Of a stretch of DNA of 29,102 nucleotides, positions 9,112 to 15,619 are shown piece by piece. The DNA is from Salpingoeca rosetta. Lineage: Eukaryota; Protista; Choanoflagellata. Position numbers and translations under genes: made by a program. Every line of letters begins with the position of its first letter. Within the stretch, counting starts at the first letter, position 1. The notes beneath the pieces were generated by a model that was not told where the DNA came from, did no database searches, and saw only the letters and a list, made by a program, of their open reading frames with translations. The stretch covers positions 1,974,610 to 2,003,711 of the forward strand of contig JAWQFM010000008.1 of NCBI GenBank assembly GCA_033442325.1, read 5' to 3'.

Positions 9112-9610
9112 GCTGCTGCTTCCTTCTTGCCTTGCTTTGCTGCTGCTGCTGTTTGCACCTGTTTGCTGTGCTCGCTTCGCCTCTTGCCCTGATCTTGGGT
9201 GGTCGCGTGGTCGTCTCTTCTTTTGTGTGTCAGCCGAAGAATAAAAATTGTTTTCGCGCTCTGTGAATTTGACCAATCATTTCACACCATTTCCTTCAGC
9301 ACCCCATACGAACGCCACCCCTCCACCACGCACCCGTGTTTGTGTTTGTGTTTTTGATGAGCTGTTTGGCTTACGCCCCAAGCGACAAACAACTGTTGCC
9401 ACCTCCTTGGCGCCGTTATCTTCTTTTCCCTTCTTCTCCCCTCTCCTTGCTGCGTCTCTGAGACTGGATGACACAAACACAGTGTTGAAGTGAGCACCTC
9501 CTTCAGCGCCGAAGATTGTCAGCGTCCCCCTCTGTCCACGCACGCGCGCGTGCGACTCAAAGACGCCCATCCAGCAGCACATGCGGTGGCGCTCCTCGAG
9601 ACTCATCAGG
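9112..9610. promoter_or_regulatory. Putative bidirectional promoter between LSG1 and the Notch-like gene
   Basis: Divergent ATGs at 9111 (-) and 9611 (+). AT-richer core at ~9238-9295. No long microsatellite. Confidence 0.45.
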
Positions 9611-10030
9611 ATGTCGGCTCGCCACCTCGCAGCTGCGTTGGTTCTTGTCGCCGCTGTTCTGTGGAGCGCGGCGATAAGTTGCCAAGCCACCGAGGAAACC
9701 TGCAATGACCAATCGGTGCTGCTGCAGATTGAGGGCCTCTTCAATGAAATGGACTCCGACAACTCCACGACCATCGTGTCAGCAGAATACACGGCATATT
9801 GCGCCTCTGATATCAACGGCACTTGCCCCAACATCTCTTTGTGAGTGCAACTGTATCGCCTGCCTCCTGTCTGCCCTCGGCTTCCTTTAGTGCGCTCGTT
9901 GTTTGTGCGTTCATGTCTGTGCGTGCTTTGTTTGCACCTGTGCCATCATGCATCCTCTCTCTTGTTGATTCGTTTGAATCAGCGCGCACGCGCTTGGCAG
10001 CAGGGATGCATGCTTCATCCATTCGCTCGC

Positions 10031-10101
<71 letters not shown>

Positions 10102-13100
10102 TTTGTCACTTGCACCAGCTCACACGTCTCTGTTGTGGTGCACTTGCGCTCTACTCATCACCCACCACCCCAACACCGGTGTCTTCCATTGCAGGGCCTT
10201 TTCTTTTGACACCGACGGCAGCGCGTCGTTGGACCCGCACGAGTTCCGCACGCTGGTGTGCTCTCTGCTGTTGAATGGAACGGACATTGCTGCCAACGCA
10301 ACGACGACGTCGGCACCACCCACATCAGGCGCCCTCTCCACCACCGCCACGACCAGCACCTGCCCGTTTGGTGGCTGTGGCGTAGGAGTGTGCGAGGAAG
10401 GCCGGTGCGTGTGCCCGTCAACGCACACGGGCGACGCGTGCGAGTTTGAGCTGTGCGCGGACACCCCTGGCGACTGCATCAACGGTGGCGAGTGCATCCA
10501 GCACAGCTTCGGCGGCCAGCAGACCCAGGAGTGCCTGTGCCCTTCCAATGCGTGGGGTTGGACGTGCGAGTATGTGGAGTGCGACCAAGGCATGTACCGC
10601 AACACAAACACGGACACGTGCGAGAACATCACGGCGTGCGCGTACCCGGCGCAGTACGAGGCACAGCCAGCCACGCGCTCCACGGACGCCATCTGCCTGG
10701 CCGTGTCTCCCGCGTGCGACTTTCCAAACACATATGAGGCGCAGGCGCCGAGCGAAACGCAGGACCGCGCGTGCTATCCCGTCATGCCGTGCTTTCCAGG
10801 GCAGGTGGAGGTGCAGCCACCAACGCCAACCAGCAACCGCGTTTGCCAGTACACCACGACCACCACAAGTTCCACCACGATTGCGACAACGACAACAACC
10901 AGCAGCAGCAGCAGCAGCAGCACCACCACCACCACCACCTCAACCAACTCCACGTCCACAACAACAACAACAACAACAACAACAACCACAAGTTCCACCA
11001 CCAGCACCACCACCAGCAGTGCGAGCTCGACTGCGTCGTGTGCGGGCGTGACGTGCCTCAATGGCGGCCGCTGCCGTGCTGGCAGGTGCGTGTGTGCGTC
11101 TGGGTGGGTTGGGGCCGCGTGCGAAGCGTCGGCCAACACCGCTGTCGTCAATTCCCGCGGCAACATCACCGACCTTAACCGCATCTACCGCCTCTCAAAC
11201 CAGGAGGCAACGCTTATCAACCCCTGGCACGCCTGCGCCAACCAGACCTGCCGCACCGTGTTCGCTGACGGCGTGTGCGACCCCTCGTGCAACACCGCCG
11301 CGTGTGTGTTTGACGGCGACGACTGCGTGGCCATCGCCCCCATCTGCAAGCAGGTGGCGGCCGGCACATGCACGTTTGGTGGCGACGCGTGCAACCCGGC
11401 GTGCGCAACCTCCGAGTGCCTCTGGGACAACAACGGCTGCGGCACGTGGGATACAGGCGACAACAGCCTGGCTTACACACTGCGCCTGTTTCTGGACCTT
11501 GAGCTGTCTGTGTTCACAGGCCGCGTGCAGAGCACGTTTGCATATCGCCTCTCCCAACGGCTCGACGGGTTTGTCACCTTTGCCGCTGTTCGCCAAGCCG
11601 TCATGTTTGGTCCATCATCGTCGCCATCATCAGCAGCATCTGCCGCAGCATCGTCGTTGTCGTCGTCGCCGTCATTGCTGAGTGCCTCCTCCGCCATCGC
11701 CAACCGTCCATGGCGGGCGCGGCGCGAGGGCGATGTTGCGTCGCGTCCAGTGCTCCAAGTTGACGCCACCATCACCCCGCGCTGCAGCGTCAGGTGCATC
11801 ACCTCCTCGCAGGCCGCCGCAGGATATGTCAACGCCATTGTCGCCGCTGGGGCGTCCTCGTCTGATCTTGGTGTCCCCGTGCTCCGTGCACAGGCAACGA
11901 CATCGGGCAATGGCGGTGACGGTGGCAGTGGTGGCAGCGTGAGCGTGTCGCCTGCGGGCGCAGCCACCATCGCGGGTGTGTGTTTGCTTGCACTGGGTGT
12001 GCTGGTTGTGATTGGCGTTGTTGGCAAAGGAGCCAAGCGACGAGTGACGATTGAAGCCATTGAGCTGCATGAGGGTGGCGCACACACCAGCCCGCCACCG
12101 CCACCGCCACAAGTTGATGATGCTGCGGCGTGGAGCGATGGAGGACCGCTCCCGGCCAAGCGAGCACGCCACCACCACCACCAGCAGCAGTACGAAGACA
12201 GCCCGCAGTTCAGTGGCAGGATGGCGACGGCTGTGTCGTCATCGTCGTCGCGTCTGCTGGCGATGCGCGGAGATGACGACTTTGACCCCAACATGGACCA
12301 TGCTGCTTATCCCCGTTTTAAGAGCAGCACCAACACCAACAGCAGCGTCACGTCACCACAACACCAGCACCAGCACCACCAGCACCAACACCAGCAGCCC
12401 GAGTACCAGCCGCTGCCGCGGCGCCGCAGCTCTTCGGTGTCGTCGTCGTCGTCGGTGGCTGCTCTGATCCGCACGCTGAGTAGGAGCGCCAGCACCTCTG
12501 CAAAGGTCTGGCCCGCGCCCCAGCCACCAGCATACACCGAGCACGATCCACACCAGCAGCAGCAGCAACAACGCCAACAACAGCACCAACAGCACCTGCA
12601 ACAGCACCAACAAGACCAGCATCAGCATCATCAGCAGCACTTGGCCCGTGGTGATGACGCCCTGTTCTCGCATATGGGGGCGATTGGTGAGGAGCAGGAC
12701 GATGATGGCTGTGGTGGTGGTGAGACGGCGCTGGACGCGTTTATCAACTCACAGGCACAAGGAGAATGCAGCACAACCACGGGCACCACTCATCACAGCG
12801 ACAGCAGCATCCCTGGCACGACTGACACGTGGATGGGCAGCGAGCACGCCAGTATGGCGAACAGCCCTGCGGAGAGCGCGTGCACGGGGTCGAGTGTGCA
12901 CGGCAGCGCCATGGCCACCAACCCGCTGCTGCTGGACAACGACGCGCTGGACTTTGCAGTGTTCTCATCGGATGCTCATGCACTGATGCACAGCGACCAC
13001 CAGCACGGCGCTTACGACGACGCACACAACGTCCGCTTTGATCGCCATCACCATAAGCCGCGGCCCGTGCTCTCGCCCATTGTTGGCGACGTTGATCTTG

Positions 13101-15214
13101 ACCAGCAGCAGCGGTATGGGTGGCAGTCTGATGGTGCTGATCACGCGGGACCCGTGCCCGTGATCGGTGTTGGCGATGGCGACGTTGGTGGCGACGATGC
13201 GTTGCGCCCTGCACCGCTGTGGTCGCCTCACACCACAGCAGCACCACCGCCGCCGCCGCCCATGATGGCGCTGCATGGCGACGACGACGGCGCGATCACC
13301 AATGACGAGGACTTGATCCGCGCGTGTGCACGGGACTTGGCGGCGGCGCGGCGGTCTGCAAACATCGGGGTTGTTGTTGCCAACACGCACGCGCGCGCAG
13401 CTGGCAGCGTTGCTGACCCACAACAACAACAGCAGCAGCCAGACGTGCACGTGCACCCCTCGCGTTACTTACACCTGCAGATGACCGGCGACGGCAGCTC
13501 TTTGTCGCTGGAGCAGCTGTGCACAGACATCACACCCGTCCTGCCGCGCCGTGCTATTCCGGCACGCAGCGAGCGGCAGCACAGCACCCAGCGGTACGAG
13601 CAAGGCAGTGACGCTGTTGGCCCTGCTGTGTCTCATGCACAGCAACACGAGTCATCGTCATTATCACCACTTGTGCGTGGTGGGGAGTGGTCATCGCCGG
13701 GCAGTTCGCCGGGTGACGGCAGCACGACCGCCAGCACCACACCGCCACAGGGCCATACGCCGCGCTCACATGCTGACGATGATGACAACGACGATGACAA
13801 CGACGACATTGCTCATGATGGCGACACGAGTGGCGGTTCTAGTGCACAGGGTCACGTGCACGCTCACGCCAGCCCGCGCGAATCGCACCAGCCACCGCGC
13901 ACCGCTGCGCCGGCCGTGCCCTGCGCGCCCGCTTCATCTCCCCTGGCGCGGGCATGCACAACAGCGTCTCCAACGTCACAACTTCCGCCACCACAGGAGC
14001 AGCAGCAGCAACAGCAGCAGCAACAGCAGTCGTTGTGGAGTGCTGATGATGCGCGCAATGAACAGCGGGAGCTGTTGGCCGCATGTGCGTCTGCGAGCGC
14101 TGTGGAACGCGGTGCCATCTTCACTGCCCTCTTGCAACTCGAGTCGGCAGCATCATTATCCTCATCACCATCATCATCGTCGTCGCCGTCGTCAGCATCG
14201 CCATCAGCGCGTGGAGCGATCGCGATCGCGACCACGAACACAACGCCGTCGTCGTCGTCCGCGCCCTCTCCGCAACAGATCGGCGACGACGAACCCACAG
14301 CCCGTGGTGGTGATCGTGGTGATGGCCCTCGTGCTGGTGATGGTGCGGGTGTGCGCGCGTTCCTGCGTGCCATTCCCTCCGGCGAGCTGCTGTGCGTGGC
14401 CGGCCCCCGTGGCGAGACGCTGCTACACATGGCGTGCGAGGCGCAGTGCATGCCTGCGGTGCGTGTGCTGCTTGCGGATGCGGTGCGAGCGTCGGCGCTG
14501 CTTGCGACGAGAGATGACGACGGCCGCACGCCGCTGCACATTGCCGCGTCCGTCGGCTTTGAGCCCGGTGTCGAGGCCATCCTCAGCCTCAGGACCCCGC
14601 AGCCCAGGCCCGGTGCTGCTCGTGGCGCCCGCGGTGCTCGTGGTGGTGTTCACAGCAGGGATGGCAACAAGGGGCAGCGAGGTGGGCCATCAGCTGATGT
14701 TGATGTTGATGTTGAAGTTGACGTTGATGCTGCGGACAGCACCGGTGCGTCGCCGCTGATTGCGTGTGTGCGGCAGCGCCAGTTGCGGTGTGCCAAGCTG
14801 CTGCTGCGGGCGGGCTCGAACCCGGACCATCGCGACGTGCGCGGGTGGGCGGCCGTGCACTGGGCGGCCGTGCAGAACGACGCGAGCGGCGTGAAGCTGC
14901 TGTTGGCGTACCGTGGCGACATCAACATCAAGACCAACAACAGCCAGACGCCGCTGCACCTTGCCACGCGCGAGGGCAACGTGAAGGTGGTGCAGCTGCT
15001 GTTGAGCAGATTTGCCAAGCGGCACGTGGAGGACGCGTTTGGGCAGACGCCCGCGGGCCTGGCGCGCGAAATGAAGGACACAGCTGTTTTGCAGGCGTTT
15101 TCGTCCACCACCTCTGTGTCTGGTCGTGGTGGCCAGGCCCTGCGCAGCAAGCGGCCCGCTGCCCCCAAGATGCCGCTGCTGCGACGCGGCAGTGGCGGCG
15201 GCAGCACAGCGTGA
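9611..15214 (+). CDS. Notch-like single-pass receptor, ~1749 aa: signal peptide, EF-hand pair, EGF, TNFR-like Cys repeats, Thr/Ser stalk, 2 LNR, NOD/NODP-like, TM, low-complexity linker, ankyrin repeats
   Basis: Exon 1 9611-9840 (|GTGAGT) and exon 2 10195-15214 (GCAG|), phases match, 5250 nt. Signal peptide MSARHLAAALVLVAAVLWSAAISCQA. EGF at ~10361-10444, 10454-10570, 11039-11125. LNR PWHAC...DGVCDPSCNTAACVFDGDDC (11222-11326) and second LNR (11345-11440). RARR at 11714-11725. TM at ~11960-12025 followed by KGAKRR. Ankyrins GETLLH, GRTPLH, GASPL, AVHWAA, QTPLHLATREG, GQTPAGLA (~14400-15100). Confidence 0.92.
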
Positions 15215-15619
15215 TGCCAGCGTGTTTGTATGTATGCGTGCGTATGTGTTTGGAAGCGTGTGCGAATATGGTTGACGATTGTATGTGTGTGCACGTATGT
15301 TTGACGTGTTGGCATTTGTGGAAGTGTTGTTTTTTGAAGTGATGTGTTTGTTGGGTTGGTTCTGACAGCGTGTGCACAGTGACTGTGTATGTGCAAGAGC
15401 TGGTGTTCCGGGGGGGGGGGTTGTTCAGTGCTCTTTCTTGCGGTAGCTATCTTGGGTGGTTTGTTGGATTGCGGTATTCTTATGCAGCAGTGGTGGAGAT
15501 GACATGGTGTTCTGCTTCTTTATTTGACGTCTTAACTGATGAATGAACACGATGACATGAAATGATACAACTTCTTACACGCACGTGTGTGTGTGTGTGC
15601 GCGTGCGTGTAGGTGTGCG

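Follow-up and report, generated by a model that had tools for sequence, protein, structure and literature searches.

Notch-like genes are already known from choanoflagellates: the gene of Monosiga brevicollis encodes a signal peptide, one EGF module, two LNRs, a transmembrane (TM) helix, and three ankyrin (ANK) repeats (Gazave 2009, PMC2770060), and Mylnosiga fluctuans has a protein with the order EGF-Notch-TM-Ank (Richter 2018, PMC6040629). NOD and NODP, the two halves of the heterodimerization domain (HD) in the negative regulatory region (NRR) of animal Notch, have been reported as absent from choanoflagellates and sponges or as eumetazoan innovations (PMC2770060; PMC6040629), and the premise of an earlier sequence-only reading of the DNA described here, that both are taken to be animal specific, is true to that literature. 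Richter et al. hypothesized that the Pfam NOD and NODP models are too bilaterian (PMC6040629), the two domains have been claimed to be widespread from a bulk alignment (PMC7649014), and a 2025 preprint mentions in passing “structures reminiscent of” the NRR in choanoflagellates (10.1101/2025.09.30.679519). In the literature, we found no paper that tests the HD in choanoflagellate Notch-like proteins. Here, we analyzed a stretch of 29,102 nucleotides from Salpingoeca rosetta (assembly GCA_033442325.1, contig JAWQFM010000008.1, positions 1,974,610 to 2,003,711 of the forward strand; hereafter the window), which evidently carries the S. rosetta counterpart of the M. brevicollis Notch-like gene. 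We propose, with a probability of roughly 0.8, that positions 11123-11902 encode the extracellular juxtamembrane module of a Notch-like type I receptor in a choanoflagellate and that this module, although divergent, is truly homologous to the NRR of animal Notch. The NRR as a protein module is probably older than animals. In composition, the module likely consists of Cys-knot LNRs resembling LNR-B and LNR-C packed on an HD-type, SEA-like alpha/beta sandwich, whose NOD and NODP halves are split by a Ser/Ala loop containing RARR|E.

HMMER, run exhaustively against 1.8 billion representatives, returned 131 matches, among them many animal Notch proteins, including that of the sponge Sycon ciliatum, and a small family with two LNRs, a juxtamembrane segment, a TM helix, and ANK repeats (P0132/P0001 from Barroeca, P0003, P0004, P0013, P0015, P0017, and P0011). 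Word-indexed homologue searches with the window NRR and with P0003 gave nothing useful, as low-complexity words swamped the candidates. Among named relatives, Barroeca monosierra, a choanoflagellate, comes closest, at 44% identity, and animal Notch proteins, which are 24-30% identical to the window protein, lie on the other side of the tree.

Evidence for a Notch-type HD comes from profile-profile comparison. To exclude the pull of the LNRs, we cut these away, built an alignment (A1) of the juxtamembrane segments that remained in the seven two-LNR proteins, and compared it by hhalign with the same region of ten animal Notch proteins (alignment A2), in which Pfam finds NOD in eight and NODP in nine. 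The two alignments matched over 121 columns with a probability of 96.8% (E 2.8e-10, score 61.8); 60 column shuffles of A1 scored at most 17.9, and A1 reversed scored 12.4. The match reached 91% (E 1e-6) for the window sequence alone and was still 96% after the window and Barroeca sequences were removed from A1. Each half also matched A2 independently and in register, which bears out the NOD-like and NODP-like segments that the sequence-only reading had proposed: the N-terminal half scored 29.0 (E 2.8e-5, columns 6-42 to 6-42) and the C-terminal half scored 40.4 (E 1.9e-7, columns 17-57 to the NODP columns 94-137), compared with at most 13.2 for column shuffles of each half. The NOD-like strings are TLRLFLDLELSVF at 11477-11515 and FAYRLSQRLDGFVTF at 11537-11581, and the NODP-like strings are VLQVD at 11750-11764 and RCITSSQAAAGYVNAIVA at 11792-11845; every string quoted in that reading lies in frame 1 of 11195-11900(+) where it had been placed. 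When the A1 profile was run against 177,635 distinct PDB sequences, four matches were obtained, all of them Notch1 NRR/HD chains (E 0.006-0.016), and the profile matched the Notch1 HD-C chain 3i08_B. Furthermore, phmmer alignments extended from the LNRs through the TM helix (query 8-278) in two animal Notch proteins, and a MAFFT alignment was collinear throughout. These profile comparisons make it very likely that the HD encoded within 11123-11902 is homologous to the animal Notch HD.

Directly N-terminal to the HD are two LNR units with six Cys each, which Pfam PF00066 detected above its cut-off (E 1.3e-12 / 2e-13 for the two units). In phmmer alignments with solved NRR chains of Notch2 and Notch3, query residues 6-91 aligned with 2oo4_A 37-121 and residues 9-83 with 6xsw_C 42-119, with LNR1 on LNR-B of the Notch1, Notch2, and Notch3 chains. 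Against animal Notch proteins, the two LNRs were collinear with LNR-B and LNR-C, as the initial reading had them, and the animal LNR-A matched only as a separate weak hit. Where LNR-A would be, that reading had noted a Cys-free linker, and the 36 residues from the last EGF-like Cys to the first LNR Cys are indeed without Cys. In Notch, the LNR-A linker supplies the S2 plug. The linker of the S. rosetta protein contains the motif VVNSRGNITDLNRI, which is clear in five of the seven two-LNR relatives and degenerate in P0013 and the fragment P0011, and which may stand in for LNR-A. Hydrophobic residues immediately before NPW (TLINPW) are kept and form a candidate plug.

Structure prediction compared with Notch NRRs, the check that the sequence-only reading had suggested, gave an HD-like fold. 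AlphaFold2 (AF2) applied to 11195-11902 with an 18-sequence alignment produced a model with a predicted local distance difference test (pLDDT) score of 80.6 and a predicted template modeling (pTM) score of 0.77, in which the LNRs are followed by a strand-helix-hairpin unit, a disordered loop (residues 141-180), and a hairpin-helix-helix-strand unit. The model is a SEA-like alpha/beta sandwich with the LNRs predicted to pack on the HD. The top 13 Foldseek matches of this model in the PDB were all Notch1, Notch2, or Notch3 NRRs (E 1.6e-8 to 5e-7, probability 1.0), and the next, unrelated match had an E value above 0.1. A shape search of the ESM Atlas returned no row with a TM score above 0.35. 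The predicted SEA-like fold of the juxtamembrane domain is robust, its assignment to the Notch HD specifically draws mainly on the sequence profiles, and the closed arrangement of LNRs on the HD is a prediction that may depend on animal data.

The loop between the two halves carries the furin-type motif RARR|E exactly where it was first read, at a position equivalent to the S1 site of Notch. RARR is the sole RX[KR]R motif in the 588-amino-acid ectodomain, and in 20,000 shuffles of the ectodomain such a motif landed in the loop in 0.5% of cases. RARR|E lies 8 residues ahead of the next strand, a spacing similar to that of RQRR|E in mouse Notch1 (7abv), which lies nine before SIVYLEIDN. A basic site occurs at the S1-like position in five of the seven relatives (RSKR in Barroeca, ARRR in P0003, NRRR in P0004, and LRR in P0013); P0015 and P0017 have no basic site in the loop. 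The Sycon Notch loop carries RSKR, which qualifies the statement in the 2025 preprint that RXXR is found only in bilaterians (10.1101/2025.09.30.679519), and S1 is not universal even among animals (PMC4810162; 10.1101/2025.09.30.679519). We rejected the idea that the Ser/Ala loop is an intron or artifact, as RNA reads run continuously through it at a depth of 6-26 with no joint inside it, and we ruled out SEA autoproteolysis, as the sequence has no GSVVV-type motif. At the end of the HD, the strand LGVPVLRAQ, earlier placed at the S2-equivalent position, indeed aligns with YKIEAVQ of Notch1, the strand that bears the S2 (ADAM) site. The S2-equivalent bond would therefore be V|L (11879-11884), and LGVPVLRAQ may be cut by an ADAM-type protease.

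The segment 11195-11900 is contained in a 1789-codon open frame at 9845-15214(+). In three stranded RNA sequencing runs, coverage on the + strand spanned 9400-9793 and was then unbroken over 10188-15300, with no splice joints within 11195-11900. We infer intron 1 (Table 1) from its sequence and from RNA depth, which is zero over 9991-10187; no splice-joint read was listed for it. The open frame called from 9845 begins within this intron, and its first ~117 codons are therefore not protein. The signal peptide MSARHLAAALVLVAAVLWSAAISCQA read from exon 1 gives the predicted protein a type I topology and places the NRR outside the cell. The unbroken RNA reads and the signal peptide indicate that the gene is expressed and that the segment is genuine exon sequence for the extracellular part of a type I membrane protein. 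The protein order is signal peptide, EGF-like modules, two LNRs, juxtamembrane domain, TM helix, long disordered linker, and ANK repeats. This includes the order EGF repeats-LNR-TM-ANK by which Richter 2018 recognized Notch receptors, with EGF-like modules that score 17.5-22 bits, under the Pfam cut-offs.

Table 1. Features of the S. rosetta Notch-like gene in the window
Feature	Position	Strand	Evidence or description
Exon 1	9612..9841	+	ATG at 9612, signal peptide; read from sequence; RNA coverage 9400-9793
Intron 1	9842..10194	+	GTGAGT donor, ttgcag acceptor; frame kept by split codon TT|G; sequence and RNA depth gap
EGF-like module directly upstream of the region	11039..11125	+	Open-frame amino acids 399-427; Pfam EGF_2 17.5 bits, EGF_Teneurin 20.8 bits, both under cut-off
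Conserved Cys-free motif VVNSRGNITDLNRI in place of LNR-A	11144..11185	+	N-glycosylation sequon N-I-T; low AF2 confidence
LNR1, equivalent of Notch LNR-B	11234..11326	+	NPWHAC...FADGVCDPSCNTAACVFDGDDC, six Cys, canonical FDGDDC calcium-ligand motif; Pfam PF00066; pLDDT >90
LNR2, equivalent of Notch LNR-C	11345..11440	+	Six Cys, ends LWDNNGC; second Pfam LNR stretch; collinear alignment to LNR-C
HD N-terminal half (NOD-like)	11474..11614	+	Strand YTLRLFL, helix (model residues 109-122), beta hairpin (125-140); AF2 and hhalign
Ser/Ala-rich disordered loop, equivalent of S1 loop	11615..11734	+	Model residues 141-180; pLDDT 41-48; length varies among relatives; transcribed, unspliced
RARR (then E), candidate proprotein-convertase S1-like site	11714..11725	+	Motif, loop position
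HD C-terminal half (NODP-like)	11735..11896	+	Strands 181-195, Cys pair PRCSVRC, helix SSQAAAGYVNAIV, short helix, strand VLRAQA; pLDDT 90-94
LGVPVLRAQ, last HD strand	11867..11893	+	Hidden Markov model alignment to Notch1 chains; opposite Notch1 YKIEAVQ
Gly/Ser-rich stalk, HD to membrane	11897..11959	+	Sequence
TM helix AATIAGVCLLALGVLVVIGVVG and basic stop-transfer KGAKRR	11960..12043	+	Hydrophobic helix 11960-12025; aligns with TM and basic anchor of relatives and animal Notch
Cytoplasmic ANK-repeat domain, approximate limits	14342..15079	+	Pfam Ank_2, E 5e-39

The genome encodes all three protease classes of a Notch-type cascade: furin/kexin-like convertases with Peptidase_S8 and P-domain, one of them with a furin-type Cys-rich region (GF_recep_IV); an M12B ADAM-type protease with a propeptide; and presenilin. 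In a proposed mechanism, a furin/kexin-like convertase would cut the Ser/Ala loop in the secretory pathway, with the halves remaining one domain and the HD keeping the ectodomain attached to the membrane stub after the cut. In the resting state, the last HD strand, LGVPVLRAQ, would lie covered by the LNRs together with the linker that is retained ahead of LNR1. Pulling or other perturbation of the ectodomain would unfold the module and expose this strand to an ADAM-type metalloprotease, and presenilin/gamma-secretase would then free the ANK-bearing tail. We infer each cleavage step and the force gating from homology with Notch; homology, predicted fold, expression, and the three protease classes form the established part. 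We regard actual operation of the module as a Notch-type switch as a tentative possibility. It is doubtful that the single-celled ancestor shared by animals and choanoflagellates already ran a complete switch, with a convertase-cut heterodimer, an LNR-guarded metalloprotease site exposed by force or ligand, and presenilin release of the ANK-bearing tail, and that this switch still works here with a two-LNR cap, possibly without DSL or CSL.

Several observations weigh against identifying the module as a Notch NRR. Two LNRs are present, with LNR-A absent, where an NRR has three (A, B, and C), and LNR2 has DNNGC instead of DGxDC and is missing part of the acidic calcium ligands. Pfam NOD (PF06816) and NODP (PF07684) gave no match to the window even at E<=10, and the E values of the A1 profile in the PDB reach only ~0.006. 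The confident closed model came from an alignment that included animal Notch proteins, and Notch NRR structures belong to the training data of AlphaFold2; with non-animal sequences only and the upstream motif included, mean pLDDT was 55, with the LNRs below 50, and without animal sequences Notch2 was only slightly ahead of other SEA-like folds (8.7 versus 7.4). Of the seven “non-animal” relatives, five stem from transcriptome or metagenome assemblies, and their taxon was judged by their architecture and by a tree with weak support; for P0003, P0004, and P0017, non-animal status follows from architecture and from a tree whose support is modest (57/73). Generic ankyrins and DARPins, not Notch, ranked first when the ANK domain was searched against PDB sequences, and two pathway partners are at best borderline in the genome, CSL as a weak, partial LAG1-DNAbind match of 30.1 bits (profile positions 102-148; G000:C1:710419-710565, + strand) and DSL at 25.7 bits against a cut-off of 24.2 (G000:C34:647389-647526, - strand). 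The ANK search is no test of a Notch-specific ANK domain because generic ankyrins and DARPins dominate it. The Barroeca LNR2 (P0132, near residue 590) ends in LWGNNAC with the acidic DGxDC residues likewise lost, and these residues are kept in LNR1 and also in LNR2 of P0003, P0013, and P0011; from these sequences, one calcium site seems to have been lost from LNR2 in a lineage-specific manner. Because the module has two LNRs instead of three and falls below the curated Pfam thresholds, we call it a homologue and variant and not a standard member of the NRR class.

The Pfam silence, which extended to the whole genome when NODP was searched at lenient thresholds, favors the view that the juxtamembrane domain is one of the generic SEA/ferredoxin-like stalk domains known from mucins, protocadherin-15 MAD12, and IA-2 and was joined to LNRs independently of animals, leaving NOD and NODP animal specific. 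Convergent domain shuffling of this kind is formally possible according to Richter et al. (PMC6040629). This silence is uninformative because the HD of Sycon Notch (P0019, residues 898-1040) also falls under the Pfam gathering thresholds for NOD and NODP, at 15.9 and 18.8 bits. One relative matches Pfam NODP at E 0.0014. In the window protein, NOD and NODP are recognized by profile methods and missed at the curated Pfam thresholds. Convergence would also have to account for profile matches that are specific to Notch, with both halves in register in hhalign and only Notch1 matched in the PDB, as well as for an identical order of LNR-B, LNR-C, HD, TM, and ANK, a shared Cys pair and helix motif, and an S1-like site in the same loop. 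We consider such an independent origin improbable. Contamination or recent horizontal acquisition from an animal, which would void the pre-animal inference, is next to negligible, and nothing was found in its favor: the window lies in a contig of more than about 2 Mb in an assembly of 55.4 Mb and 68 contigs, Barroeca monosierra is the nearest named relative with animal Notch proteins across the tree, and all 24 public runs listed share one organism label, with 14 of them holding at least half of the sampled words. We rejected contamination on these grounds.

Homology of the fold could also be accepted without a switch, with the module acting only as a stiff stalk or as a spacer for adhesion. 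RARR would then be uncut or cut without consequence, and the protein would not be activated by regulated intramembrane proteolysis. The conservation of the hydrophobic core, Cys pair, and last strand among relatives that are 21-40% identical to the window segment argues for selection on the whole module and speaks against a mere spacer, as do the conserved position of the basic site and the finding that the genome encodes each of the three protease classes. The features that a spacer would explain are the missing LNR-A and the lost acidic ligands of LNR2, the long Gly/Ser stalk from the HD to the TM helix, which we take to be longer than the matching stretch in animal Notch, the two of seven relatives with no basic loop site, and the borderline status of CSL and DSL; moreover, S1 cleavage is largely dispensable for fly Notch (PMC4810162). 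On balance, we judge the spacer reading somewhat unlikely, and we retain a divergent Notch NRR homologue as the preferred identification.

Other observations concern the gene and genome more widely. Exon 1 also encodes an acidic D-x-D-x-S loop, and intron 1 contains a (TG)n microsatellite of ~33 units at ~10034-10100. The cytoplasmic linker at 12090-14190 has a high content of poly-Q, poly-H, and CAG/CAA repeats on which RNA reads pile up, yielding many false “goes back” or “skips” joints, such as from 13439 to 12554; an apparent GC>AA difference at 12573-12574 lies within one such pile-up and may be a mapping artifact. Elsewhere in the genome, the sole other PF00066 match is in a 217-amino-acid open frame (G000:C12:295878-295943, + strand; 27.6 bits). 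The DSL match sits in a 12,438-codon open frame that could encode a giant EGF/DSL-like surface protein, a possible ligand. One convertase gene (G000:C1:1687127-1690333) has at least two exons encoding Peptidase_S8 (180 bits) followed by P-domain and GF_recep_IV and looks furin-like; Gazave 2009 (PMC2770060) lists Furin as metazoan specific.

Textbooks and domain surveys hold NOD and NODP to be an animal invention and Notch signaling to be a hallmark of animal multicellularity. Because a choanoflagellate has and expresses the LNR-HD module, the sequence and predicted fold of which are conserved, the regulatory core of the receptor, beyond its generic EGF, LNR, and ANK pieces, probably moves back before the animal-choanoflagellate split. 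The silence of Pfam NOD and NODP in sponges and choanoflagellates then appears to be a problem of sensitivity, and the Sycon HD, under the Pfam cut-offs itself, lends support to Richter et al. (PMC6040629), who guessed that these models have a bilaterian bias. A claim of absence is thereby replaced by positive evidence for what specialists had hypothesized. As the organism is apparently genetically tractable and synNotch and SNAPS chimeras exist, mechanically gated receptor proteolysis before animals, and its use by a single cell, becomes directly testable.

In comparison with the animal Notch NRR (LNR-A, LNR-B, LNR-C, and HD; PDB 3eto, 2oo4, 4zlp, and 7abv), the S. rosetta module shares the predicted capping by LNRs of an alpha/beta sandwich that adjoins the membrane, an HD split by a disordered loop with R-x-R-R|E, a Cys pair in HD-C followed by an amphipathic helix, and a last strand, the S2-bearing strand in Notch, just ahead of the stalk and TM helix. 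It differs in having two LNRs instead of three, with a conserved Cys-free motif that contains a glycosylation sequon replacing LNR-A, in an LNR2 without part of the calcium-ligand motif, in a CxxxC pair where Notch1 has six residues between the Cys (CVQASSQC), and in a sequence too divergent for Pfam NOD and NODP. SEA-like switch domains (mucin SEA, dystroglycan, protocadherin-15 MAD12, cadherin-23 MAD28, and IA-2/phogrin; SNAPS, PMC6586460) showed no sequence-profile link to the window, are without an LNR cap, and ranked below Notch in every search, and the window is without a G|SVVV autoproteolysis motif. The choanoflagellate Notch-like proteins described before share this domain order, and that of M. 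brevicollis also has two LNRs. The Notch-like architecture in choanoflagellates was thus already known, and what is new here is an NRR from a non-animal that has two LNRs and, very likely, a genuine HD.

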